Shown here one piece after another: positions 4,186 to 61,239 of a stretch of 64,000 nt of DNA. The notes below the pieces were generated by a model. That model saw nothing but the letters and a program-made list of their open reading frames with translations. It was not told where the DNA came from and made no database searches. The number at the start of each line of letters is the position of its first letter. The stretch's first letter is position 1. Location of the stretch: the sequence record KT919973.1; one strand, given 5' to 3'. A program made the position numbers and the translations under genes.

Positions 4186-4446
4186 ATGAGCTATTTACTA
4201 TCAATGCAAAAAGGTTGTTCAACTGTCGTAACCGTGAGTGGTGTACCGTTAGTTGTAGATCACGAAACTGAGTATGTGACTGTTGATGGAAACGGTTACG
4301 TAACGGGTTGGACTGACCGCCCGTACTTCGACGAAGAAGATCAGACATGGTCGTGTTATGAGCTTTACGGTGAAGAGTGGCATTTGGCAACTATTGCAAA
4401 CCCAACGAAAGAAGCAGTCGAAACGTTGATCGAGGTATACCCATGA
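4186..4446 (+). CDS. Hypothetical protein
   Basis: ATG at 4186 after GGAG. Confidence 0.7.
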   Translation: MSYLLSMQKGCSTVVTVSGVPLVVDHETEYVTVDGNGYVTGWTDRPYFDEEDQTWSCYELYGEEWHLATIANPTKEAVETLIEVYP

Positions 4447-4811
4447 GTTGTAATTTAATGGAACGCCTCGCTGATGAATATCGAAAATCAGACGTGTATG
4501 ACCCTGATTTGCACTGTGATATTTTTGCTATCCCTGTTCAAGAAGACGGCGAAATGGATTCGATATACATCAAAGAAGCATTGTATGGTGTATATAATGA
4601 GATTCGGCGCTATACTGGCATGTCGCTAGACGAAGCCAAGGAATGGTTTAAAGTTCAAGAAGTTGAAACGTGGTTTGGTGAATCAAACACTGTAAACGAA
4701 AAAGTTTATAACACGTTTTTCGTGCGTTATGATATTCCTGACGAGTTAGTTAAGCAACAATACTCTGAGTGGAAACAAGGTCCCTCGGCAACAATTAAGG
4801 AATCATTTTGA
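4443..4811 (+). CDS. Hypothetical acidic protein
   Basis: ATG at 4443 after GAGG; ATGA overlap. Confidence 0.7.
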   Translation: MSCNLMERLADEYRKSDVYDPDLHCDIFAIPVQEDGEMDSIYIKEALYGVYNEIRRYTGMSLDEAKEWFKVQEVETWFGESNTVNEKVYNTFFVRYDIPDELVKQQYSEWKQGPSATIKESF

Positions 4812-28694: not shown

Positions 28695-29645
28695 ATGAAT
28701 TTTGATCCGAAAGAACTTCTATGGGAACAACGCTACCGTCCACAAACAATCAACGACTGTGTATTACCCGAGCGCGTGCGTGAACACTTTCAAGCGATGA
28801 TTGATTCGGGTGAAATCCCAAATATGCTGTTAGCAAGTTCTTCACCTGGTACTGGTAAAACGACTGTTGCGCGTGCTGTGCTTGCAGATATGGGTTATGA
28901 AGTGCTTTTCATTAACGCATCATCTAGTCGCGGCATCAAGCTTGTACAGAACGATTTACCTGCATTCTGTTCGACTGTATCATTCTCTGGTAAGCCAAAA
29001 GCAATCATTCTTGATGAGGCAGACAACTTAACACCAGATGCTCAGAAAGCACTACGTGGTTTGATTGAGCAATACAGCAAAAACGTTCGCTTTATTCTGA
29101 CATGTAACTATTCTCAGAAAATCTTAACACCGATTCGTTCACGTCTACAGACATTCGAGTTTGTATACGACAAAGACGAGCGACTATCGTGTATCAAGCA
29201 AATGATTCTGCGTTCGATGAGTATTTGTAAGCAAGAAGGCATTTCTGTGACTAATGCAGCGGTGTTGAAAGAGCTTGTGAAACGCAATTACCCAGACAAT
29301 CGTAAAACTGTTGTTGCGTTGCAGAATTATTCTCGTAAAGGTGTTATCGACGAAGGTATTCTTTCAGAGATCACGGCAAACGATGATATTTCTGAAATGA
29401 TTGCGGCTTTGAAATCGAAAGACTTCAAAACGATTCGCGGTCTAATTCCGAAATACTCTGGCGATCTCGCGTCGTTTCTACATAATCTTTACAAAGCGGC
29501 ATATACTGACTTAGACGGTAATAGCATCCCGACATTCATTCAAATTGTAGGCGAAGCAAACAACAACGCTACAACTTGTGTCGATACTGAAATTCTACTA
29601 GCGTACACGCTTGTTCAAATCATGCTTGAGTGTACTTTCGTATAA
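28695..29645 (+). CDS. 44: Clamp loader large subunit (AAA+)
   Basis: LWEQRYRP, SSSPGTGKTT, ILDEAD, FILTCN and SRL. Confidence 0.95.
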   Translation: MNFDPKELLWEQRYRPQTINDCVLPERVREHFQAMIDSGEIPNMLLASSSPGTGKTTVARAVLADMGYEVLFINASSSRGIKLVQNDLPAFCSTVSFSGKPKAIILDEADNLTPDAQKALRGLIEQYSKNVRFILTCNYSQKILTPIRSRLQTFEFVYDKDERLSCIKQMILRSMSICKQEGISVTNAAVLKELVKRNYPDNRKTVVALQNYSRKGVIDEGILSEITANDDISEMIAALKSKDFKTIRGLIPKYSGDLASFLHNLYKAAYTDLDGNSIPTFIQIVGEANNNATTCVDTEILLAYTLVQIMLECTFV

Positions 29646-29654
29646 GGGGGTTTG

Positions 29655-30146
29655 ATGGACATCTTTGAATTCCTAGCGAAAGGCGAAGAAACTGAAGCGA
29701 GAATCGCTGAAGAAGAAAAAGAATACGAAGAAGAGCTGAAGAAAGCGAAGAAAGCAGAGAAATATTCACCGTTTGATTTCGTTGACAGTATCTACATGAA
29801 GAAACGTTTACCAGATGCTGTTGTTGATGAGCAATATCTACCATTTATGGTGAATCGCGCATTGAGCAACGGCATCGATACAGTTCTTCATGCGTATATC
29901 ATGGATTCGGTTGGTAGTAAGTTACCGAATGAAATGCAATATGATTATTTGTATCATGCAGTTCGTAAAGGTAAGCGATTCAATTCATGGGCAAAAGAAC
30001 CGAAATATGACTATGTTGATCTAATTGTTGAGGTATACAACGTCAATAAATCACATGCAATTAGTATTTCAAATCGTCTAACGCCCGAAGAGTTGAATCA
30101 ATTACAAGAATGGTACGACTCACGAACGGGGGGCTTAACACGCTAA
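29655..30146 (+). CDS. 62: Clamp loader small subunit
   Basis: Y.PFMVNRALS, QYDYLYHAVRKGKRF and Y.VN...A; follows gene 44. Confidence 0.9.
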   Translation: MDIFEFLAKGEETEARIAEEEKEYEEELKKAKKAEKYSPFDFVDSIYMKKRLPDAVVDEQYLPFMVNRALSNGIDTVLHAYIMDSVGSKLPNEMQYDYLYHAVRKGKRFNSWAKEPKYDYVDLIVEVYNVNKSHAISISNRLTPEELNQLQEWYDSRTGGLTR

Positions 30147-30727
30147 ACAGAATCGGGTTTATGTTTGCAGTTGTCATTGTGCCAACGTTTGATAGTTGCG
30201 GCATTCTTTGAAGATTTGCCGCAATGAATACAAACTGAAATTGGTCTCTCATCCCAACTGTCGCTAATCTTTTTCTTTACATCGCGTGTTCTCTCAACTC
30301 CTTTGAATGTAGACGGTACACCCTTTCGATTACTAGGCTTCCCGACTTTAGCATCACTGAGCTTTTGTTTATGTTCATTGCTCTTGGGCTTGCCTTTAAG
30401 AGAGTCTGAAATATTTCGGCGAGTTGTTTCGGAACGTTTAGTTCCCTTTACACTACCGCCTTCGCCGCCTATTTTGAGATTATAGGTGTTTTTACTACTT
30501 ACAAAATTTTCGTTCACTATCAGAGATTCGTATTCATATGCGTCTTCTTCGCAGTCGAACGTTTTTAAAATTATCTTTGTGAAATTATCAACACCGTATT
30601 TATCAATTGAGCGAAATATAATCTTTCCAGAACCCATGTAACCGTCGTCGATGTTATTCGTTGAGTGTTTACCAATATAAACTTTATTGTTTATGTTGTT
30701 TATTATTTTATATACGATATGAAACAT
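30143..30727 (-). mobile_element. Free-standing GIY-YIG homing endonuclease (Seg-like)
   Basis: ATG at 30727; IVYKI.N.IN.KVYIGKH, YMGSG, E...N; NUMOD3-like SETTRRNISD and SNEHKQKLS repeats; antisense insertion between 62 and regA. Confidence 0.9.
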
Positions 30728-51838: not shown

Positions 51839-52156
51839 ATGACTACATTCAACGTTAACTTCACTGCTGCAATCGAACTTACTTCTAAAGAATTCGTTGA
51901 GACGAATCGCATCAAAGGTCGTTTCTTCAATTCAATGGTTGGTCATGAGCAAGGCGAGCACGCATTAACTGCGCCGATTGAATCATTCAAAGTAATCGAC
52001 AACAAAGTATACGCAGAGACGCGCAACGCAGTATATCACATTCGTAACCTATCTGCTGTTGCTCTTGCTGACTTCAACACAATCAACGCACCAGTTTACG
52101 TAAAAAAAGCTGATGCGCAGTTTGATGAACTAGTTAAATCTGCTCTGTTATCGTAA
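51839..52156 (+). CDS. Hypothetical protein
   Basis: 105 aa, GAGAG RBS. Confidence 0.7.
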   Translation: MTTFNVNFTAAIELTSKEFVETNRIKGRFFNSMVGHEQGEHALTAPIESFKVIDNKVYAETRNAVYHIRNLSAVALADFNTINAPVYVKKADAQFDELVKSALLS

Positions 52157-52608
52157 TGTACCCGAAGAATAAAAGCTATTATGACTTGGTGTATCTTGAC
52201 ATCGCCAAGTCATTTGCTAAGAAAAGCACCTGCAAGCAGAAGCAAGTAGGTGCTGTCATCGTCAAGAATGATCGTATTATCTCACACGGTTACAATGGTG
52301 TTCCTGCGGGTGTGACACACTGTAACAAAATCGAAGACTATGGCGATTTATCACATCGCGAATGGTCAGAAATTCACGAGATACATGCGGAACAAAACGC
52401 GATTTGCTACGCTGCACGCGCTGGCATATCTACTGAAGGCGCGACTATGTATGTTACAACGTCGCCGTGTCATAACTGTGCCAAGCTGATAGTCGCGGCT
52501 GGTATCAAAATTCTCATTGTAGGTTCGATTTACAGCGGTTCACAACCCGATTGGTGGCATTGGCTAGATGCTCGTGGTGTGAAAGTTATTATGTTCGAAG
52601 ACGAATAA
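52156..52608 (+). CDS. cd: dCMP deaminase
   Basis: STC...VGAVIV, GYNG, HAEQNAI and SPCHNC. Confidence 0.93.
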   Translation: MYPKNKSYYDLVYLDIAKSFAKKSTCKQKQVGAVIVKNDRIISHGYNGVPAGVTHCNKIEDYGDLSHREWSEIHEIHAEQNAICYAARAGISTEGATMYVTTSPCHNCAKLIVAAGIKILIVGSIYSGSQPDWWHWLDARGVKVIMFEDE

Positions 52609-52662: not shown

Positions 52663-53595
52663 ATGAAAAGTACAATGTTTTTAAACAACATCACATGCAT
52701 CGATCACGCATACGTTGATGAAAACGGTAAAATTAACGGTATGAGTTACAATCTATGTGTTGAAATCACCGGCGAAGTAGATGAAACTGAGCAAGTCGTA
52801 ATTGACTTCAGCGGTTGCAAGAAAGCGATCAAGCAGTTAGTAGACGAATCTGAACACGCAATTGATCACCGTCTAGTTCTTGTCAACGGATACAGTGAAT
52901 ATGTGTTAAGCGATATTGAAAATCGTGACCGTACACAAATCGACTCTCCGTTATTCACTGCTGTTTCGTCTGTCAATGACTGGTATCAAGAGATCGTCGA
53001 TGTATCGCTATTCGATACTGATCTTCACATCCCGTCGGATACGCTGTACATGAACTATCTAACCGAGTATCTTGAAAATATGTTGCTGAAGCAGCTTAAA
53101 CTACAAGGCTATCCGGTCACACACGTCACTGTAGAGCTTTCAGAGAGCTTTGACTTGCCATCATGGGCAAACACGCACGTTTCATTTCATTACGCTCATG
53201 GCTTGCGTTCTAGCTCTTCTTATGGGTGTCAGAACATTGCACATGGACATCGTTCGTTCATTGCAGTTGATGCCATGTTAAACAGTCGTGGTCGCAAAGT
53301 ACTGGAGCGCATTGCTGAAGAAATGAGCGGCTACATCGTATGGAACGACAATCTAACTGCGGAAGGTGCGGTAGCGTATTGTTCACAGCGTGGTAATTTC
53401 TATTTGAACATCGATTCAGAAGAAACAATCGTAATCAACACTGAAACTACAGTTGAAAATCTCGCGAACTACATTGCAAAAACATACGAAGACGAGTTTC
53501 AGCGTATGGGTGTACAGCGTGTATGGGTATCTGAAGGTCTTTCGAAAGGCGCAGTCGTTGACATCAAAATCAACAAAGAATTACTCTATAAGTAA
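52663..53595 (+). CDS. queD: QueD-like 6-carboxytetrahydropterin synthase (double-length)
   Basis: DHAY, VVIDFS, DHRL, CQNIAHGH, TTVEN and SEG T-fold motifs; adjacent to folE. Confidence 0.75.
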   Translation: MKSTMFLNNITCIDHAYVDENGKINGMSYNLCVEITGEVDETEQVVIDFSGCKKAIKQLVDESEHAIDHRLVLVNGYSEYVLSDIENRDRTQIDSPLFTAVSSVNDWYQEIVDVSLFDTDLHIPSDTLYMNYLTEYLENMLLKQLKLQGYPVTHVTVELSESFDLPSWANTHVSFHYAHGLRSSSSYGCQNIAHGHRSFIAVDAMLNSRGRKVLERIAEEMSGYIVWNDNLTAEGAVAYCSQRGNFYLNIDSEETIVINTETTVENLANYIAKTYEDEFQRMGVQRVWVSEGLSKGAVVDIKINKELLYK

Positions 53596-53662
53596 TCAAC
53601 AATTAATGTTTAGTAGCACGCTTCGGCGTGCTATTATTGTTTTCTGACTAAGAGGAAATAGA

Positions 53663-54337
53663 ATGTTAGACAAAAATAAAGTAGATCCAATTCTTGGACA
53701 AAAAGTTGAAGCGCATCTTCGTGAAATCGGAATGCACACGCCGACTGTTGAAAACGGTCTAACTGATGATGAAAAGAAAGTAATTCTTGAAGATCGATTC
53801 ACTGACATCATGCAAGCTCTAGGTCTTGACCTTACTGACGATTCGCTTGTTGATACACCGAAGCGTTGGGCTAAGATGATGGTCAATGAACTCATGAGCG
53901 GTCTATCACCAGATATGTTCCCTAAATGTACTGCTGTAGACAACAAAATGAACTACGATCAGATGGTTTGTGAAAAAGGCATTACTGTTCTTTCACAATG
54001 TGAGCATCACATCGTAACAATCGACGGCTTTGCAACAGTCGCATATATCCCAAATAAGAAAGTACTTGGTCTTTCTAAGATGAATCGCATCGTCGAGTAC
54101 TTTGCTCGACGCCCACAGATTCAAGAGCGTTTGACTGTTCAAATCGCTGAAGCACTGAAGTTCATTCTTGAAACTGAAGACGTGGCGGTGATGTTAGACT
54201 GCAAACATTATTGTGTCAAAGCGCGTGGTGTTGAAGACAACAACTCAAGTACTGTTACAAGTCATCTATCAGGTGCGTTTAGAAATGAGCCTGAAGCACG
54301 AGCAGAATTTATGTCTCTTGCTCGTTCACAGGCGTAA
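53663..54337 (+). CDS. folE: GTP cyclohydrolase I
   Basis: DTPKR, SQCEHH, GLSKMNR, RPQIQERLT and HYCVKARGV. Confidence 0.96.
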   Translation: MLDKNKVDPILGQKVEAHLREIGMHTPTVENGLTDDEKKVILEDRFTDIMQALGLDLTDDSLVDTPKRWAKMMVNELMSGLSPDMFPKCTAVDNKMNYDQMVCEKGITVLSQCEHHIVTIDGFATVAYIPNKKVLGLSKMNRIVEYFARRPQIQERLTVQIAEALKFILETEDVAVMLDCKHYCVKARGVEDNNSSTVTSHLSGAFRNEPEARAEFMSLARSQA

Positions 54338-55010
54338 CGTACCAATCTTTGAACTTAGCCGATGTGTATTTCACGCATCGGTTATACACAGTAACATTAG
54401 TGGTATTATTAGCTTCGGCTGCTAAACGAGACGATTCAAACACCCCGTTTGGCGTGTGAAATAGATACTTCGATTGCGGGTTTTGACTCCCGACTTTAGA
54501 CTTAGCGAGTTTTCGCTTATGTTCTTCAGTTTTTGTCGTTCCCTTCAGAACACCTTTGCTCTTCGCAACATATTCACCACGAAGATAGCGTTCGTCGTCA
54601 ACTCGAATGTATTCAGTTTCACCAGTAGCAATGCATATCGCAGCAAACTTACCTATATGATGCTTTGCAGCATCTTTTCTAGCATCTTTTGTCATCGACT
54701 CAAATAGCCTAGAGTTCATATTGAACTCGCGTTGCTGTGAGCCGTTCGACATATTGAATGCTGTTAGTGCAAACTTCAGGCGATGTTTCAAATTTCCATT
54801 GAACATTTTAGCCAATAGCAAATGAGCTATATAATGCTCACGTGCTGTCAATCGCACTAGGTTATGTGATTCATCACTACCACCCGCACATTTAGGTAAA
54901 ATGTGATGTTTTTCACTATAGCCGTCGGGTGTGTTTTGAATTCGATTCTCGATTAGAGAAATGTACCATTTCGTGTATTTGTTTAGTATAAGATTGTCGT
55001 GTGTTAACAT
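54309..55010 (-). mobile_element. Free-standing HNH homing endonuclease (Mob-like)
   Basis: EKHHILPKC.GGSDE..NLVRLTAREHYIAH; NUMOD3-like TEEHKRKL; C-terminal FESSRLAAEA helix; antisense to the cluster. Confidence 0.9.
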
Positions 55011-55043
55011 TGTACTCTCTTTAAATAAGCATTACTGTGTTAA

Positions 55044-55051
55044 TATTTATA
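55044..55051 (-). promoter_or_regulatory. T4-type late promoter for the HNH gene
   Basis: Exact TATAAATA on the minus strand, 33 nt before the ATG. Confidence 0.75.
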
Positions 55052-55072
55052 ATTTTTAAGACGAGGTTCACA

Positions 55073-56449
55073 TTGATAATTGAATACGTTATGTCTGCGA
55101 CGGGTCATGCTCGTCTTGGTGCAGCACATAAACTAATGGACGTGGTTGACACGTCCTATTTGCGTAAAATACTAGACGCAGCACAAGATCTCGACGGTGT
55201 TCATAAAATCAGTATGTTGTATAACGCATACACTGAAAAGAAAGTCGGTAAGCAAATTAAAGACTTGTTCGGTGATTCTGTATACAAGATTCATGTCGAT
55301 TCTGGCGGTCTTCAGATTGTTAACTTAGGTCTAGAGAATACACCAGAACTTCGTAAAGCAGTTTACGAGAATCAAGCAGAGTCTGGTGATATTGGCATGT
55401 GTTTCGATGAAATCCCGTTGCACAATGAAGCACAAGGTGGTGGTTCTGCTCGTATCAACACGAAAGACAAGGTCTTCATGTATGATCTAGCGTACAAATA
55501 CGGTGTTAAAACAGGTAAGAACATACGCGCTCAGATTGAAACATATCTTGAGAAAGAAAGCGATTGTAAACCGTACATAATCTTACAAGGCAACTCAGAC
55601 GATGACTTTAAGGCATTTAGTGATGGTATAATGTCACAACTTGAAGGCGTTGAGCATCACATTGCTGGGTGTGCTGCTGCCGATACATGTATTGGTAATG
55701 GCGTGCGTGAGTCTATTGACATGATGAGTGTCATTCCGAAGCTCAATATCCCAGATAAAGCAAAGAAATCTGTGCATATGCTAGGTGTCGGTTCTGTTAA
55801 GCGATTGTTGCCTGCTGTAGCTCTTATCAGAAGCGGTTATTTCGGTGATGATTTTCACATTAGCTACGACTCATCAACTCACACTGGTTGTTTAACCAAT
55901 CGTGAATACACAGATAAGCTCGGTCGTCGTCGTAAGATCTCAGGTCACGGTATCTTTAAAGATGGTAAGAAATTACCGTCGCGTGAACTAGATGAAATGC
56001 TAGATGAAGTGTGGGGTCGTTTCGGTCATGTGTTACCTCGGGGTAAAGAAGAGTTCAAAGAGTTCGCAACACGATTGTGGTTGAAAGAACTCGACAAAGA
56101 AACGATGACAGACGAAGATATTGTGTTTGAAGTTGCTTGTAATATGTGTATAATCTTATCACAAGTCAATAATTTCCAAGCAATCATCTCCGAAACTCTT
56201 GACTTGAATACACCGAAAGCAGTTGACTTATCATCATTCTTCGGCGGGGTTGTAGAAGAAAAAGAACCACAAGAAGGGTTTAAGAAATGGTCTTCGATTC
56301 GTCGTCTAGACGTTTTAGATAAACTACTTGATGTGAAAGACGTTGCTGCATATCAGCGATGGCACGCAAGTCATATTGACAAGCTACCATCTATGCGTAT
56401 TCGTCGCGGTACAACTGCTGAATTCCCAGCTTTCAAAGAACAAGAATAA
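55073..56449 (+). CDS. dpdA: TGT-fold deazaguanine transglycosylase (DpdA/DpdA2-like, probably DNA-targeting)
   Basis: Probable TTG start at 55073 after GAGG; HVDSGG, MCFDEIP, ILQGN, HMLGVG and SYDSS motifs; embedded in the folE/queD/queC/queF cluster. Confidence 0.75.
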   Translation: MIIEYVMSATGHARLGAAHKLMDVVDTSYLRKILDAAQDLDGVHKISMLYNAYTEKKVGKQIKDLFGDSVYKIHVDSGGLQIVNLGLENTPELRKAVYENQAESGDIGMCFDEIPLHNEAQGGGSARINTKDKVFMYDLAYKYGVKTGKNIRAQIETYLEKESDCKPYIILQGNSDDDFKAFSDGIMSQLEGVEHHIAGCAAADTCIGNGVRESIDMMSVIPKLNIPDKAKKSVHMLGVGSVKRLLPAVALIRSGYFGDDFHISYDSSTHTGCLTNREYTDKLGRRRKISGHGIFKDGKKLPSRELDEMLDEVWGRFGHVLPRGKEEFKEFATRLWLKELDKETMTDEDIVFEVACNMCIILSQVNNFQAIISETLDLNTPKAVDLSSFFGGVVEEKEPQEGFKKWSSIRRLDVLDKLLDVKDVAAYQRWHASHIDKLPSMRIRRGTTAEFPAFKEQE

Positions 56450-56450
56450 T

Positions 56451-56488
56451 AAAATGGGTTGACAATTGTCAACCCATTTTTGTATAAT
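56451..56488 (+). promoter_or_regulatory. Terminator/early promoter cassette
   Basis: AAAATGGGTTGACA-AT-TGTCAACCCATTTT; TTGACA (56459) and TATAAT (56483). Confidence 0.8.
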
Positions 56489-56519
56489 GCATATTGGTTA
56501 CATTTAAGAGAAAAATATA

Positions 56520-58178
56520 ATGAGTAAAAGCGATTACTATGTGTATCTGTTAATAGACCCTCGAACAAATAAAGTATTTTATGTAGGAAAGGGTAGGAAT
56601 GAACGTGCTAAGTTTCACGAATCCGAAGTTCGTCGAGATATTTCAAGCAACCGAGTACTAAATTCAGCAAAGAAAAAAGAAATTAACGACATCATCAAGA
56701 GTGGTTATGATGTCGTTATTAAAATAGTCAAAGACAATTTAACTGAAGATCTTGCATTCGGTATCGAATCGAATCTCATTGAATCATTTGGTATCGAAAA
56801 TCTATCAAATGCAGTACGCGGGCATCATAGAGAAAATTGCGAGCGTTTTAAACTGTCAATGTCATTCGACTCTGAATTGTCATCTATATATACAACAACA
56901 CTGTACAACGTATTCAATCGAGCATTTTCGAATGACTACAATGGTAATAAGTGTCAATCTCATTTAATTTCAAATCATAATGTACTAAGAACAATGCTCA
57001 AAGCAGTCAACATGATTGACAATGACGGTATGTGGCGTAACACATCGCGTACAGTATTATGTGTTGAATGTATTGAAGTTGTTTACCTTGCATATATGTT
57101 AGGTGCAGATATGAGTAAGATAACATTTGCCACATCGTCATTAAAAAAAATTGAATGGGTTTCAGAACGATTCGGTATTAGAACACAATACAATGTATTA
57201 GGAGCAGTCATGGAAAAATTTGACGTGTGTATTATGAATCCACCATACGAACGAACACAAGGGAAACTGTTTGTTGAGAAATGCATGGAATATGCGCATG
57301 AAGGTGTTATCATCGGGTTAGCTAACTTAGTTATGGACTATTGCAAATACACACGCGGTACGTCGCAGAAAAACCCAGCGCAAAACTTTTCACAAACGTT
57401 ATTAGATCGTTCGCGTGAAATTTACATGACGAATAACACGCTCGTAGACGGCACGACTATTTTCAGCGCAAACATGAAGAACATGATTATAATTGCCTCA
57501 TGGGATGCAAATGAGACAAATTCAACAAAAGTAATCAACTATCAAACGGGCAAGCAAACTGTTGTGAAACGAGGTGAACGAGTCTCTTTCTTATTAGATC
57601 AAAAGAACAAAGAAATAGTTGATTCCCTGCACGAAATATTCAAAGAACGTAAGCCTTTAATTGCTGACGATAATGTACAACTTTTCCAAAAAGGTCGTAT
57701 CGTTGATAATGAACGTTTCAAAGGTATCAACTCGATCACGTACCCGATTCATGTTCAACTATGTTCTGCCGAAACATCACCGGCGTCTGGTGGAGATAAA
57801 ACGACTCAAATCGGTGCGTTAGATAGTGTATCTGCGATGATGTTTAACAAAACATTCACTCATGATAAAATAAACAACTACAAAGACATTCAATCACGCA
57901 TTGAAGAAGAACAAAGAACAATCAAACGTGGTAGTTGCGAGAATAACCCGTTAATTGCCGCCTTCAAAACAGAAGAAGATGCTAAACGAATGTTCGATTG
58001 GTTTAAAAACCCATTGATATGTCTATACGCTCTTCATACTGATTATATGCAACACGGGTATGGTATCAATACAGTCCCTATGCCATTCTGTACAATCGAA
58101 GAATTGATTGATATGGCGGGGTTGACACAAGAACACATAGAATACGCACAAAAAGCATATGAGGGTTATGCGGAATGA
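56520..58178 (+). CDS. GIY-YIG nuclease fused to an amino-methyltransferase catalytic half and a TRD-like C-terminus
   Basis: YVYLLIDPR...FYVGKG...R..H...E...N; KFDVCIMNPPY (motif IV); no recognizable intact motif I. Confidence 0.7.
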   Translation: MSKSDYYVYLLIDPRTNKVFYVGKGRNERAKFHESEVRRDISSNRVLNSAKKKEINDIIKSGYDVVIKIVKDNLTEDLAFGIESNLIESFGIENLSNAVRGHHRENCERFKLSMSFDSELSSIYTTTLYNVFNRAFSNDYNGNKCQSHLISNHNVLRTMLKAVNMIDNDGMWRNTSRTVLCVECIEVVYLAYMLGADMSKITFATSSLKKIEWVSERFGIRTQYNVLGAVMEKFDVCIMNPPYERTQGKLFVEKCMEYAHEGVIIGLANLVMDYCKYTRGTSQKNPAQNFSQTLLDRSREIYMTNNTLVDGTTIFSANMKNMIIIASWDANETNSTKVINYQTGKQTVVKRGERVSFLLDQKNKEIVDSLHEIFKERKPLIADDNVQLFQKGRIVDNERFKGINSITYPIHVQLCSAETSPASGGDKTTQIGALDSVSAMMFNKTFTHDKINNYKDIQSRIEEEQRTIKRGSCENNPLIAAFKTEEDAKRMFDWFKNPLICLYALHTDYMQHGYGINTVPMPFCTIEELIDMAGLTQEHIEYAQKAYEGYAE

Positions 58179-58678
58179 CATACAGCGATACGAATCGTTA
58201 TTCAGATGATGTTAGCTTAGAGCGTCGAAAGAAGACAGGTGAAGTATTCACCCCTCTGAATTTCGTTGATTTCATGATCGATCAAAAAAAGCATTTACTG
58301 GAAGCTGGTAAGACATGGTTCGAGCCAAGCTTTGGTGACGGTAATATAGTTTGTCGTATAATCGAACGCAAAATTGATATCGGCGTCGAACCATTACAAG
58401 CAGTTCGAGATGTATACGGTTGTGAATATATGAAAGACAATTATGAGTGTACTCTTCAGAGAATACGTGATATAGTAGGCGAGTCCGATGAACTCGAAGA
58501 GATAATGTCTAATAATCTAGCATTTTGCAACACGTTAGACAAAAACGACCGAAGCGAAGGTCGTGAATGGCCTTCTTGGTTGTTGCAGCTAGACAGAAAA
58601 TGTCTAAGAGAATCAGGCGGGCTTGCGAGTTTTTTCGATTCAAATAATGAAGGTAAAATTAATGACATCAAATTATGA
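58175..58678 (+). CDS. SAM-binding half of an amino-DNA methyltransferase
   Basis: RRKKTGEVFTP (motif X), WFEPSFGDGN (motif I), VYGCE (motif II); no NPPY; ATGA-coupled to 56520. Confidence 0.7.
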   Translation: MTYSDTNRYSDDVSLERRKKTGEVFTPLNFVDFMIDQKKHLLEAGKTWFEPSFGDGNIVCRIIERKIDIGVEPLQAVRDVYGCEYMKDNYECTLQRIRDIVGESDELEEIMSNNLAFCNTLDKNDRSEGREWPSWLLQLDRKCLRESGGLASFFDSNNEGKINDIKL

Positions 58679-59573
58679 TGAAGTATCAGCTATTGCGGCT
58701 GAGCATTTAGGTAAAAAAGCTGGCGATTACAGCGATTTCGTTAATATCGTAGACGTTCGACCAGATTTACTTGTACCCATCCCGCGTGAGCTAAATCGAA
58801 CTGATTATGGTATCACAAACGAAGATTTTGCAGGTTTTGATACATGGCATGGCTTCGAAGTATCGGCACTGACTGAACAAGGTCTGCCTGTATCTGGTAT
58901 GGCGAAAGTCGTGTACCCGAGCGATTCACCGAATATCGTTGAAAGTAAATCAATGAAACTGTATTGGAACAGCTTCAACATGGCTAAAGTCGCTGCGACT
59001 CGTGCTGAAGTACAAGGTGCAATTGAAGCTATCGCGTCGCGTGATCTATCTGAAGTCATCGGTGCTGAAGTACAAGTGAGCTTCTTCACAGTCAGATCAA
59101 CACAACCGCACGGTATGACAGGGTATGCAGAACTCGACAAATACGTATCTGAAGACACTGTATTCGACTCAGAAAGCGGTGCAGATGCTGATTTACTGCA
59201 AGAATCTCACGTGAAGCGCATGAAAGTGTTCACGCCGAATCTACGTTCTAACTGTCGCGTGACGCATCAACCAGATTTCGGTGATCTGTATGTATACATG
59301 AAAGGTGAAAAAACACCAACTATTGACAGTCTCATGCAATACATCGTGTCATTCCGTAAAGAGAATCATTTCCATGAAGAATGTGTTGAAATGATTTACA
59401 AAGCGTTACTTGATAAGTTCGACCCACAAGAGCTTATGGTAACAGCGTTATACACACGTCGCGGTGGTTGGAATATCTGCCCAGCACGTGCAACGCATGA
59501 AGAACTACTACCAGAAGCACTTGGTAGTGAAGTTGTCTCGCACACTAACGGAAGTTGTTTATTCCGTCAGTAA
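58662..59573 (+). CDS. queF: NADPH-dependent 7-cyano-7-deazaguanine reductase (two-module type)
   Basis: ESKSMKLYWNS, LRSNCRVTHQPDFG, FHEECVE and YTRRGG. Confidence 0.93.
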   Translation: MTSNYDEVSAIAAEHLGKKAGDYSDFVNIVDVRPDLLVPIPRELNRTDYGITNEDFAGFDTWHGFEVSALTEQGLPVSGMAKVVYPSDSPNIVESKSMKLYWNSFNMAKVAATRAEVQGAIEAIASRDLSEVIGAEVQVSFFTVRSTQPHGMTGYAELDKYVSEDTVFDSESGADADLLQESHVKRMKVFTPNLRSNCRVTHQPDFGDLYVYMKGEKTPTIDSLMQYIVSFRKENHFHEECVEMIYKALLDKFDPQELMVTALYTRRGGWNICPARATHEELLPEALGSEVVSHTNGSCLFRQ

Positions 59574-59628
59574 TAAGAGCTATGATGAGTGTTCAATTGT
59601 GAGCACTCATATACTTGAGAGGTTAAAA

Positions 59629-60345
59629 ATGAAAGTAGTATCTGTTCTAAGCGGTGGCTTGGACTCAACAATCCTTACGTACAAACTAGTAGATGAATAC
59701 GGCAAAGACAATGTGTTTGCATTATCGTTCTACTACGGTCAAAAACAGTCAATTGAGCTAGAAAAAGCTAAATTGACTTGTCAAAAGCTCGGTATCGAGC
59801 ATCGTCTAATCGACATCTCATTCTTAGGTGAAGTGGTAGCACCTGTATGTGCAAATATCGCTGGTTCAGATGTTGCTATGCCAACTATTCAAGACGTTCT
59901 AGGCGACCCTCAACCGCCAACTGAAGTTCCATATCGTAATATGCTATTGAACACTATCGCGTTCTCATTCGCGCAAGCAAATGGCTGTGCAGCGGTGTTT
60001 ACTGGCATTCAAGTGCATGACGCATACGGTTACTGGGACTGCACACAAGACTTTCTTGACGGCATGAACAATCTATCTGCACTGAATCGTCAACACGAGA
60101 TTGCATTACTTGCTCCGTTCGCTCGTATGTCAAAGGCAGATGAAATCGCTATTGGTGTTAAGCTCGGTGTACCGTTTGAAGATAGTCTAACGTGTTACGA
60201 CCCTAACGAAGCAGGTGAAAGCTGTGGTAAATGTCCGTCATGTGCTGAACGCATCATGAACTTCGGTAAAGCGGGTATTAAAGACCCAGCACCTTACTCA
60301 ATTGACATCCCATGGGAACAAGTATTTGCTAAGGCAGGTCATTAA
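59629..60345 (+). CDS. queC: 7-cyano-7-deazaguanine synthase
   Basis: LSGGLDST, YGQK, VPYRN, YWDC, TCY and CGKCPSC. Confidence 0.95.
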   Translation: MKVVSVLSGGLDSTILTYKLVDEYGKDNVFALSFYYGQKQSIELEKAKLTCQKLGIEHRLIDISFLGEVVAPVCANIAGSDVAMPTIQDVLGDPQPPTEVPYRNMLLNTIAFSFAQANGCAAVFTGIQVHDAYGYWDCTQDFLDGMNNLSALNRQHEIALLAPFARMSKADEIAIGVKLGVPFEDSLTCYDPNEAGESCGKCPSCAERIMNFGKAGIKDPAPYSIDIPWEQVFAKAGH

Positions 60346-60953
60346 TGTGTGGATTATTTGCTGCTAGAAGCAAGCAAGAGCTTATTGAATTATCAAAAAG
60401 CAATATTCATCGTGGTTCGCGTACTCACTCTGTGAGTACGTTTAAGAACGGTCATGTGACGGTTCACAAGTTTACAGGGGCGTTCAATACAACTAATGTG
60501 CCTGATAGTGCAGATTTTTATATCTGTCATGTACAAGCACCAACGGGAACAAGTGCTCAAGCACATCCCGCTATTGTAACAATTGAAGAGAACGGTCAGT
60601 TGCATGATTCACACGTGTGGCATAATGGCATTCTTAAAGATCATTACATGAAAAAACAGACTCAAGAATGGGATACTGCACACATCGCTGAAGCGATTTG
60701 CTACGGCAAATTAAACGAACTTGACGGTACGTTTGCTTGTTTTCACTTCATTAACGGCAATTTGCGTGTATTTCGTAATGAAATTAGCCCGTTGTTCATG
60801 AGCGAAGACGGTACATCGTTTAGCAGCACGCGAACGATTTTAACTCCAGAGCATGTTGAGCCAAATAAAGTGTTTAACATCGACTTGAAGACGTTTAAGA
60901 TGACAGTCGTAAACGAGTTCAAGACTCTTGAAAATCCCTATTTCTTTATGTGA
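60345..60953 (+). CDS. Class II glutamine amidotransferase (QueC-associated Gat)
   Basis: N-terminal MCG, HRG, HVQAPT, HP, WHNG and DGTF; TAATG-coupled to queC. Confidence 0.8.
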   Translation: MCGLFAARSKQELIELSKSNIHRGSRTHSVSTFKNGHVTVHKFTGAFNTTNVPDSADFYICHVQAPTGTSAQAHPAIVTIEENGQLHDSHVWHNGILKDHYMKKQTQEWDTAHIAEAICYGKLNELDGTFACFHFINGNLRVFRNEISPLFMSEDGTSFSSTRTILTPEHVEPNKVFNIDLKTFKMTVVNEFKTLENPYFFM

Positions 60954-60963
60954 GGTTAAAAAC

Positions 60964-61239
60964 ATGATTGAAGTGAATATCGACGACTTGCTGAAAAATG
61001 GTAAAGTCACATTTGAATTTGAGAAAGCAGATGGTTCTATTAAGACTGTAACTGGTACGCGCAATCTCGATTTCATCCCTGCTGAGTTTCACCCGAAAGA
61101 AAAGCCTTTAGCTGAAGGTGAGACAAAGCCAGAGAAAACAGAAAAGCAAAAAGCGACATGCGGTTACTTCGATCTCGAAGCTAACGGCTGGCGTTCGTTC
61201 AAACGAGCTAATTTACGCGAAGTGAAATCGTTTGACTAA
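60964..61239 (+). CDS. DUF2693/WYL_2-like SH3-barrel protein
   Basis: VTFEFEKADGS...GT, YFDLE..GWRSF. Confidence 0.75.
   Translation: MIEVNIDDLLKNGKVTFEFEKADGSIKTVTGTRNLDFIPAEFHPKEKPLAEGETKPEKTEKQKATCGYFDLEANGWRSFKRANLREVKSFD

Follow-up and report, generated by a model that had tools for sequence, protein, structure and literature searches.

The phi-ST2 deazaguanine cluster

We analysed a 64,000-nucleotide stretch of sequence record KT919973.1 (the window), in which a cluster of 7-deazaguanine genes occupies positions 52663-60953. This piece corresponds to positions 238663-246953 of the record (100% identity over 8,291 bp), the genome of Vibrio phage phi-ST2; a window coordinate is the record coordinate minus 186000. 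phi-ST2 is a 250-kb KVP40-like Schizotequatrovirus, and the region is common to about 48 related Vibrio phage records, at lower coverage. The cluster and its DNA chemistry are already known and have been measured in this same phage. We consider it probable that the locus is this published 7-deazaguanine DNA-modification cluster and that its glutamine amidotransferase (Gat) is the partner of QueC.

An initial annotation, made from the sequence alone, had named six genes in the cluster (QueD, FolE, a protein of the tRNA-guanine transglycosylase (TGT) fold, QueF, QueC and Gat). The open reading frame (ORF) listing and the family scans place all six where that annotation had put them, on the plus strand (see table). 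The order QueD-FolE-DpdA2-QueF-QueC-Gat is common to phi-ST2 and the related phage VH7D. Three further genes interrupt the cluster, all of them insertions relative to VH7D: an HNH gene, a gene for a 552-aa GIY-YIG/methyltransferase-like protein and a 167-aa methyltransferase fragment. QueE is encoded outside the cluster, about 165 kb from it: the sole QueE-like radical S-adenosylmethionine ORF of the phage lies at about 72544-73428 of the record (about 72.5 kb) and matches five QueE models (best E 7e-13), in each case with a score far under the cut-off.

Features of the phi-ST2 deazaguanine cluster and its immediate surroundings, in window coordinates
Feature	Position	Strand	Remarks
dCMP deaminase gene	52156-52608		directly upstream of queD
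QueD (6-carboxytetrahydropterin synthase-like)	52663-53595	+	310 aa; Pfam PTPS; phrog_14221
FolE, GTP cyclohydrolase I	53663-54337	+	PF01227, NF006824
HNH homing endonuclease	54309-55010	-	phrog_655
Insertion relative to VH7D	54319-55073		755 bp, between folE and dpdA2
DpdA2, DNA 7-deazaguanine transglycosylase	55073-56449	+	kinship with DpdA2 of VH7D and nt-1; TGT fold
Insertion relative to VH7D	56449-58670		2.2 kb, between dpdA2 and queF
Promoter match with overlapping palindromic hairpin	56451-56488		hairpin of 13 bp
Sigma-70-type promoter match	56459-56488		TTGACA, 18-nt spacer, TATAAT
552-aa GIY-YIG/methyltransferase-like protein	56520-58178	+	PF22945; NPPY motif
167-aa methyltransferase fragment	58175-58678	+	phrog_21201; FTP and FEPSFGDG motifs
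QueF, bimodular NADPH-dependent preQ0 reductase (preQ0 to preQ1)	58662-59573	+	QueF_N and QueF domains
QueC, preQ0 synthase (CDG to ADG to preQ0)	59629-60345	+	PF06508, TIGR00364
Stand-alone class-II (Ntn) Gat	60345-60953	+	202 aa; profile, fold and family relatives
Small ORF directly after Gat	60928-61239		WYL_2 domain
CDG stands for 7-carboxy-7-deazaguanine, ADG for 7-amido-7-deazaguanine and Ntn for N-terminal nucleophile

The biosynthetic enzymes are recognized by their families and motifs. QueD consists of two PTPS/T-fold halves, with HGH at residue 194; it matches Pfam PTPS in two stretches (43.8 bits against a cut-off of 22.4) and phrog_14221 over its full length, and is listed as ALP47397 in supplementary file 4 of PMC6884629. 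FolE matches PF01227 with E 1e-60 and NF006824 with 298 bits (cut-off 202). For QueF, both PF14819 (QueF_N, 98.9 bits) and PF14489 (QueF, 71.6 bits) exceed their cut-offs. It retains the catalytic Cys and the motifs that the initial annotation had noted, namely the NADPH motif ESKSMKLY at residue 94, Cys198 in CRVTHQPD and HEE at 238. It is nevertheless a divergent member, because its TIGR03138 score of 226 falls under the cut-off of 293. All 301 aligned residues are identical to those of VH7D QueF. Note that the GenBank product names of QueD and QueF are swapped, so that QueF is wrongly labelled '6-pyruvoyl-tetrahydropterin synthase'. QueC is a PP-loop ATPase of 238 aa (PF06508, 178 bits; TIGR00364, 168.9 against a cut-off of 150.3) with SGGLDS at residue 8 and, at 189, a Cys4 zinc motif (C-x9-C-x2-C-x2-C) whose spacer is one residue longer than the canonical x8. 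The QueC domain starts right at the annotated ATG (59629), with no N-terminal extension and no fused Gat domain.

The transglycosylase, DpdA2, has 458 aa and starts at a TTG codon with a GAGG Shine-Dalgarno sequence. A Pfam scan gives no match for it. It is 98% identical to DpdA2 of VH7D and 61% identical to the founding DpdA2 of phage nt-1 (YP_008125322), on which the family was defined (PMC6884629, Hutinet et al. 2019; phi-ST2 DpdA2 is ALP47368 in supplementary file 4 of that paper). Its AlphaFold2 model, built with 43 homologues, has a mean predicted local distance difference test score (pLDDT) of 90.5, and in a Foldseek search against the PDB the top matches are all tRNA-guanine transglycosylases (E 8e-8, probability 1.00, TM-score about 0.45-0.58). 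DSGGLQ (D76) and YDS (D266) are invariant across the 43 homologues, and D266 would be the nucleophile. We also considered membership of the DpdA1 family and rejected it, as there is no significant BLAST similarity to the DpdA (DpdA1) of phage 9g.

One part of DpdA2 may bear on the choice of base. The patch ADTCIGNG(V/L)xE (residues 196-214) is kept in most DpdA2 homologues and is located, we assume, where bacterial TGT carries its LAVGE substrate loop. The DpdA2 of nt-1 differs at this otherwise conserved patch, where it reads VSGAAIGYDSRE (VSGAAIGYDS), and according to PMC10516641 it inserts preQ0 and not preQ1. Since the alteration is found in the enzyme with the different substrate, we regard the patch as a candidate determinant of specificity for preQ1 or preQ0, judging from the aligned sequences.

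The DNA chemistry of this system is described in PMC10516641 (NAR 2023). The dPreQ1/mdPreQ1 system of VH7D, phi-Grn1 and phi-ST2 reported there is the same system as the one described here, and phi-ST2 was among the phages measured. Liquid chromatography-tandem mass spectrometry (LC-MS/MS) of phi-ST2 virion DNA gave 668 dPreQ1 and 44 mdPreQ1 per 10^6 nucleotides, and zero for dCDG, dADG, dDG, dPreQ0, fdPreQ1 and dG+ (Table 1 of PMC10516641). By our own estimate, about 0.3% of the Gs are replaced by preQ1. When expressed in Escherichia coli, VH7D DpdA2 inserts preQ1 into DNA (2,765 per 10^6 nucleotides); preQ0 is inserted about 5-fold less efficiently than preQ1, and CDG about 40-fold less (PMC10516641). 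The inference from the gene content that the cluster introduces 7-deazaguanines into phage DNA through a DpdA-family transglycosylase is thus borne out, both by dPreQ1 in phi-ST2 DNA and by the activity of the 98%-identical enzyme.

The same data decide against a mixture of dPreQ0, dPreQ1 and dG+ in the DNA, as had been predicted from the presence of QueF together with Gat. The check proposed at that time, LC-MS/MS of virion DNA, is in effect the measurement already published for phi-ST2 in PMC10516641: dPreQ1 and mdPreQ1 alone were detected, the predicted dG+ and dPreQ0 were not found, and dADG was zero. The cluster should accordingly be dropped as a candidate for DNA of this mixed kind. The more general expectation of multiple modifications holds in that two are present, but the second, mdPreQ1, is attributed in PMC10516641 to DpdM, a CxxxCxxCC protein encoded outside the window, and not to Gat. 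A scan of the whole phi-ST2 record with Pfam DUF3109 (PF11307) for DpdM gave no match. A search of it for the CxxxCxxCC motif gave one candidate, at record positions 29627-30550; it carries the motif as CPASCGSCC and has a weak match to the Pfam family CxxCxxCC.

It is very improbable that the main purpose of the cluster is to supply preQ1 for queuosine (Q) in the tRNA of the host or the phage rather than for DNA. VH7D QueF, which is identical to that of phi-ST2 in the aligned residues, complements an E. coli queF deletion and restores Q in tRNA according to PMC10516641; phage preQ1 can thus reach the host TGT, and a contribution to host tRNA queuosine is possible in principle. However, dPreQ1 is present in the virion DNA of phi-ST2, and DpdA2 inserts preQ1 into DNA (PMC10516641); QueA, QueG and QueH were not found in the viruses analysed by PMC6884629; and in phage 6E35.1a, a more distant relative, 15% of G is replaced by dPreQ1 (PMC12028318).

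The Gat protein and its link to QueC

Gat is a genuine class-II (Ntn) amidotransferase domain, because its profile match, its fold and its relatives with GATase_6/7 domains all agree. A word search found 30 relatives, several of which carry precomputed GATase_6/7 domains, and members of the family match the AsnB-type GATase_6/7 models, one of them over the cut-offs. A profile of 27 relatives compared with the PDB matches the glutaminase domains of GlmS and PurF (E 2e-5). The AlphaFold2 model of Gat has a pLDDT of 93.7, and its Foldseek matches include PurF, GlmS, asparagine synthetase (AsnS) and EgtC (E 5e-9). The protein begins with Met-Cys-Gly. The N-terminal Cys noted in the initial annotation is indeed kept: Cys2 is invariant in the family and aligns to Cys1 of GlmS. 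Residues R23, G24, N94, G95 and D110 are likewise invariant, and a C-terminal NPY motif (consensus ENPYFF) is shared; R23, N94-G95 and D110 align to Arg26, Asn98-Gly99 and Asp123 of GlmS. The phi-ST2 protein is 100% identical to the Gat of VH7D, 90.6% identical to that of nt-1 and 62% identical to that of phage 6E35.1a.

The Gat start shares one base with the stop of QueC (TAATG), and this arrangement is not peculiar to phi-ST2. An exhaustive profile search over 1.84 billion representative sequences gave at least 321 clusters of the family at E<=1e-30. Among the best 150 matches listed, nearly all are stand-alone proteins of 200-230 aa that align from residue 1 and start with Met-Cys, and all of the contexts examined are phage-like. 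An informative fusion, to QueC or to another protein, was sought among these 150 matches. Two proteins are clearly longer, one with a C-terminal DUF3310 domain and the other with an extension that has no Pfam match, and neither is informative.

To describe the gene contexts, we collected 361 Gat relatives from IMG/VR and scanned 80 fetched loci with purpose-built hidden Markov models. QueC lies upstream of Gat on the same strand in every one of the 80 loci, mostly with overlapping stop and start codons. The two genes abut directly in 72 loci; in the other 8 a single gene is inserted between them, which is HAD-like in several cases and encodes a GIY-YIG nuclease in at least one. Of the 80 loci, 63 carry QueF and 3 carry ArcS2; 14 have neither, and some of these are short contigs. 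The QueC-then-Gat pair also occurs in VH7D, in nt-1 (with ArcS2 and without QueF), in Pseudomonas phage pf16, in the jumbo Vibrio phage 2.275.O and in six of the seven metagenomic contigs examined, the seventh being a 2.3-kb fragment. Downstream of Gat, the genes vary among phages; they are often genes of nucleotide metabolism, such as DCD/dUTPase and an Rv2179c-like exonuclease.

Since QueC stands upstream of Gat in all 80 loci irrespective of QueF or ArcS2, Gat appears as an accessory of QueC. The presence of QueF in 63 of these loci means that the co-occurrence of Gat and QueF is the norm of the family rather than a peculiarity of phi-ST2. Consequently, these data do not sustain the view that Gat opens a second route from preQ0 in competition with QueF: Gat adjoins or follows QueC throughout, and it is present in nt-1, where QueF is missing. 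Another arrangement, in which Gat is the partner of QueF and its ammonia attacks the QueF thioimide, was considered and rejected, since QueC is the gene to which Gat is linked and Gat is retained where QueF is missing.

The competing route would require that QueC and Gat together constitute a Gat-QueC archaeosine synthase in split form and turn preQ0 into archaeosine (G+), leaving a DNA mixture that includes dG+. The model for such an enzyme is the Gat-QueC of phage 9g, which gives dG+ when expressed with DpdA (PMC6884629). The two cases are alike in that a class-II Gat and a QueC PP-loop module occur within a phage DpdA cluster, and the phi-ST2 Gat has the catalytic Cys and is tightly linked to QueC. 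Moreover, nt-1, which also has the QueC-Gat pair, holds a little dG+ (44 per 10^6 nucleotides). On the other hand, dG+ is zero in the DNA of both phi-ST2 and phi-Grn1, and the dG+ of nt-1 is reproduced in E. coli by ArcS2 and DpdA2 without Gat (PMC10516641). A competing branch would also be the rule and not the exception, given the 63 loci with QueF.

The proteins themselves differ as well. In 9g, Gat and QueC form one 471-aa fusion with Gat at the N-terminus, whereas in phi-ST2 they are separate genes in the order QueC, Gat, so that both architecture and domain order are unlike. The phi-ST2 pair has neither the N-terminal fused Gat nor the Gat homology to 9g that characterize Gat-QueC fusions. 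The profile of the Gat family has no specific similarity to 9g Gat-QueC (hhalign probability 3.4%, E 0.013, in the region of the HNG motif only), and phi-ST2 QueC is 25% identical to the QueC domain of 9g. The settings also differ: 9g has DpdA1, no QueF and the product dG+, whereas phi-ST2 has DpdA2 and QueF, and dG+ is absent from its DNA. On this evidence, a split archaeosine synthase is improbable. The DpdA2 system of nt-1, also among the closest known systems, comes from the same group of phages and shares QueD, FolE, DpdA2, QueC and Gat with phi-ST2; it carries ArcS2 in place of the QueF of phi-ST2, and its modifications are dPreQ0 > dADG > dG+.

Mobile insertions and neighbouring genes

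Compared with VH7D by blastn, the phi-ST2 cluster contains two insertions (see table), neither of which is present in the VH7D cluster. The HNH gene and the GIY-YIG/methyltransferase pair that they carry are later mobile insertions outside the deazaguanine pathway. The HNH gene matches the homing endonuclease family phrog_655 (E 3e-44) and lies within the shorter insertion. It shares 29 nt with the 3' end of folE, and the C-terminus of FolE is altered with respect to VH7D (224 against 222 aa). The relatives that have the HNH insertion are not the same subset as those that have the methyltransferase cassette; therefore, the two insertions move independently.

The longer insertion consists of the 552-aa gene and the overlapping 167-aa ORF, whose start overlaps the stop of the former (ATGA). 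The N-terminal part of the 552-aa protein matches the GIY-YIG family PF22945 (E 6e-16) and GIY-YIG structures in the PDB (E 3e-9), and is accompanied by a methyltransferase-like part with an NPPY motif (DVCIMNPPYE); the protein also has a weak match to Eco57I. The 167-aa product matches phrog_21201, 'DNA methyltransferase' (E 3e-83), and the C-terminal end of phrog_11371; it contains the methyltransferase motifs X (FTP) and I (FEPSFGDG). Judging from these motifs, the pair resembles a DNA methyltransferase of the N6/N4 type that is split and permuted. In a set of 50,697 phage records, only phi-ST2 and PVA23 contain the cassette (100% identity); residues 6-360 of the 552-aa protein have 30%-identical relatives in T4-like phages of Klebsiella. 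A perfect (12/12) sigma-70-type promoter match is located 32 nt before the 552-aa gene and overlaps a palindromic hairpin at the left edge of the inserted cassette. The cassette may thus bring its own promoter.

A dCMP deaminase gene directly precedes queD, and DCD/dUTPase genes lie 3' of Gat in several metagenomic relatives; the deazaguanine genes are therefore placed within a block of nucleotide metabolism. Directly after Gat, a small ORF encodes a WYL_2 domain (Sm-like SH3 barrel, E 2e-21), and its position is kept in VH7D and nt-1.

In addition, related metagenomic clusters contain three further kinds of gene: a CxxCxxCC protein (DpdM-like) between a DpdA2-sized gene and QueF, an acyl-carrier-like PP-binding gene between QueC and Gat, and a Formyl_trans_N gene (DpdN-like) near QueF (for these three gene kinds, L024:1449-2147 and 4349-4588, and L025:444-989). 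Their presence suggests further variants of preQ1 derivatisation.

Proposed role of Gat

The pathway that we propose follows the published one except at the step catalysed by QueC. As shown by others on phi-ST2 or near-identical proteins, FolE, QueD, QueE and QueC convert GTP to preQ0, the bimodular QueF reduces preQ0 to preQ1, DpdA2, a distant TGT paralog, exchanges guanine in finished DNA for preQ1, and DpdM, encoded elsewhere, methylates a small part of the dPreQ1 to mdPreQ1. Gat would hydrolyse an amide donor, probably glutamine, and pass the ammonia to QueC for the ATP-dependent step from CDG to ADG. QueC and Gat would thus act as a two-subunit, glutamine-dependent preQ0 synthase that resembles asparagine synthetase B but is split, and its product would go on to QueF and DpdA2.

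Several considerations lead to this proposal. PP-loop ATP-pyrophosphatases commonly work with a glutaminase, asparagine synthetase B and GMP synthase being examples. Ammonia is the nitrogen donor of QueC in the conversion of CDG to ADG (PMC13329287), and it is the combination of this need with the common pairing of PP-loop enzymes and glutaminases that points to Gat as the donor. In both asparagine synthetase B, which has a fused class-II Gat, and archaeal GMP synthase, which has two subunits, an ATP-pyrophosphatase likewise activates a carboxylate or amide, and a glutaminase supplies the ammonia. In particular, the Gat subunit of archaeal GMP synthase is encoded by a gene of its own and stands beside a protein of the QueC fold (PMC13329287), although that partner is a class-I Gat, whereas the Gat of phi-ST2 is of class II.

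The split format itself can also be understood. An Ntn enzyme needs its catalytic Cys as a free N-terminus, which precludes fusion of Gat to QueC when Gat is encoded downstream of it; Gat is in fact separate from QueC at every locus examined, which fits this requirement. In phage 6E35.1a, the replacement of 15% of G by dPreQ1 in a phage that carries Gat indicates a high flux through preQ0 in the presence of Gat. We put the chance that Gat is the ammonia-donating subunit of QueC at about even. Whether the pair works as a two-subunit preQ0 synthase that depends on glutamine or another amide is, in our judgement, similarly balanced. The two-subunit format appears to be standard for QueC across a large family in phage-like contexts (at least 321 clusters and 361 IMG/VR loci). 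We found no description of such an enzyme in the literature searched.

A number of points weigh against this proposal. The ammonia-donor role is deduced from the order of the genes and the fold of the protein. For bacterial QueC, free ammonia suffices, and the chemistry thus does not require a partner. The phi-ST2 Gat itself matches no named family in the Pfam, NCBIfam and PHROGs scans, including the Pfam Gat families. Mass spectrometry of DNA is blind to the free G+ base and leaves room for G+ as a minor side product. Finally, the family motif HVQAPT has an invariant Gln64 at the position of Arg73 in PurF (GHVRYPT) and GlmS (AHTRWAT). This Arg anchors the alpha-carboxylate of glutamine, and the glutamine-binding Arg is present in AsnB as well as in PurF and GlmS. 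With Gln in its place, the substrate of Gat may not be free glutamine, or may be bound differently.

The last point bears on another explanation, in which Gat is an Ntn amidohydrolase that acts not on glutamine but on a different substrate (for instance an amide of the gamma-glutamyl or another type, compare EgtC) in some other deazapurine or nucleotide step, without channelling of ammonia. In addition to the invariant Gln at the Arg73 position, the EgtC-type Ntn hydrolases among the structural matches of Gat agree with it, as do the nucleotide-metabolism genes often found downstream of Gat in other phages. However, the link to QueC holds without exception (all 80 loci) while the downstream neighbours vary, and Gat retains the remaining residues that serve catalysis and the oxyanion hole in glutamine amidotransferases. 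We regard this explanation as unlikely, but as a more serious contender than a split archaeosine synthase.

The list for phi-ST2 in the supplement of PMC6884629 gives DpdA2, FolE, QueD, QueE, QueC and QueF, without Gat, and we found no mention of the 202-aa protein in the searched text of PMC10516641. Gat thus does not appear in the published lists of genes examined for these phages, although it ranks among the most tightly linked genes of such clusters. If Gat is indeed the ammonia donor of QueC, it would add a missing component to the phage preQ0 pathway and would explain why Gat and QueC occur both fused, as in 9g with the product G+, and split, as in phi-ST2 with preQ0 and preQ1. What determines whether a nitrile or an amidine is formed could then emerge from a comparison of the fused form with the split one. 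With such a subunit, deazaguanine synthesis would also no longer depend on the free ammonium of the infected cell.

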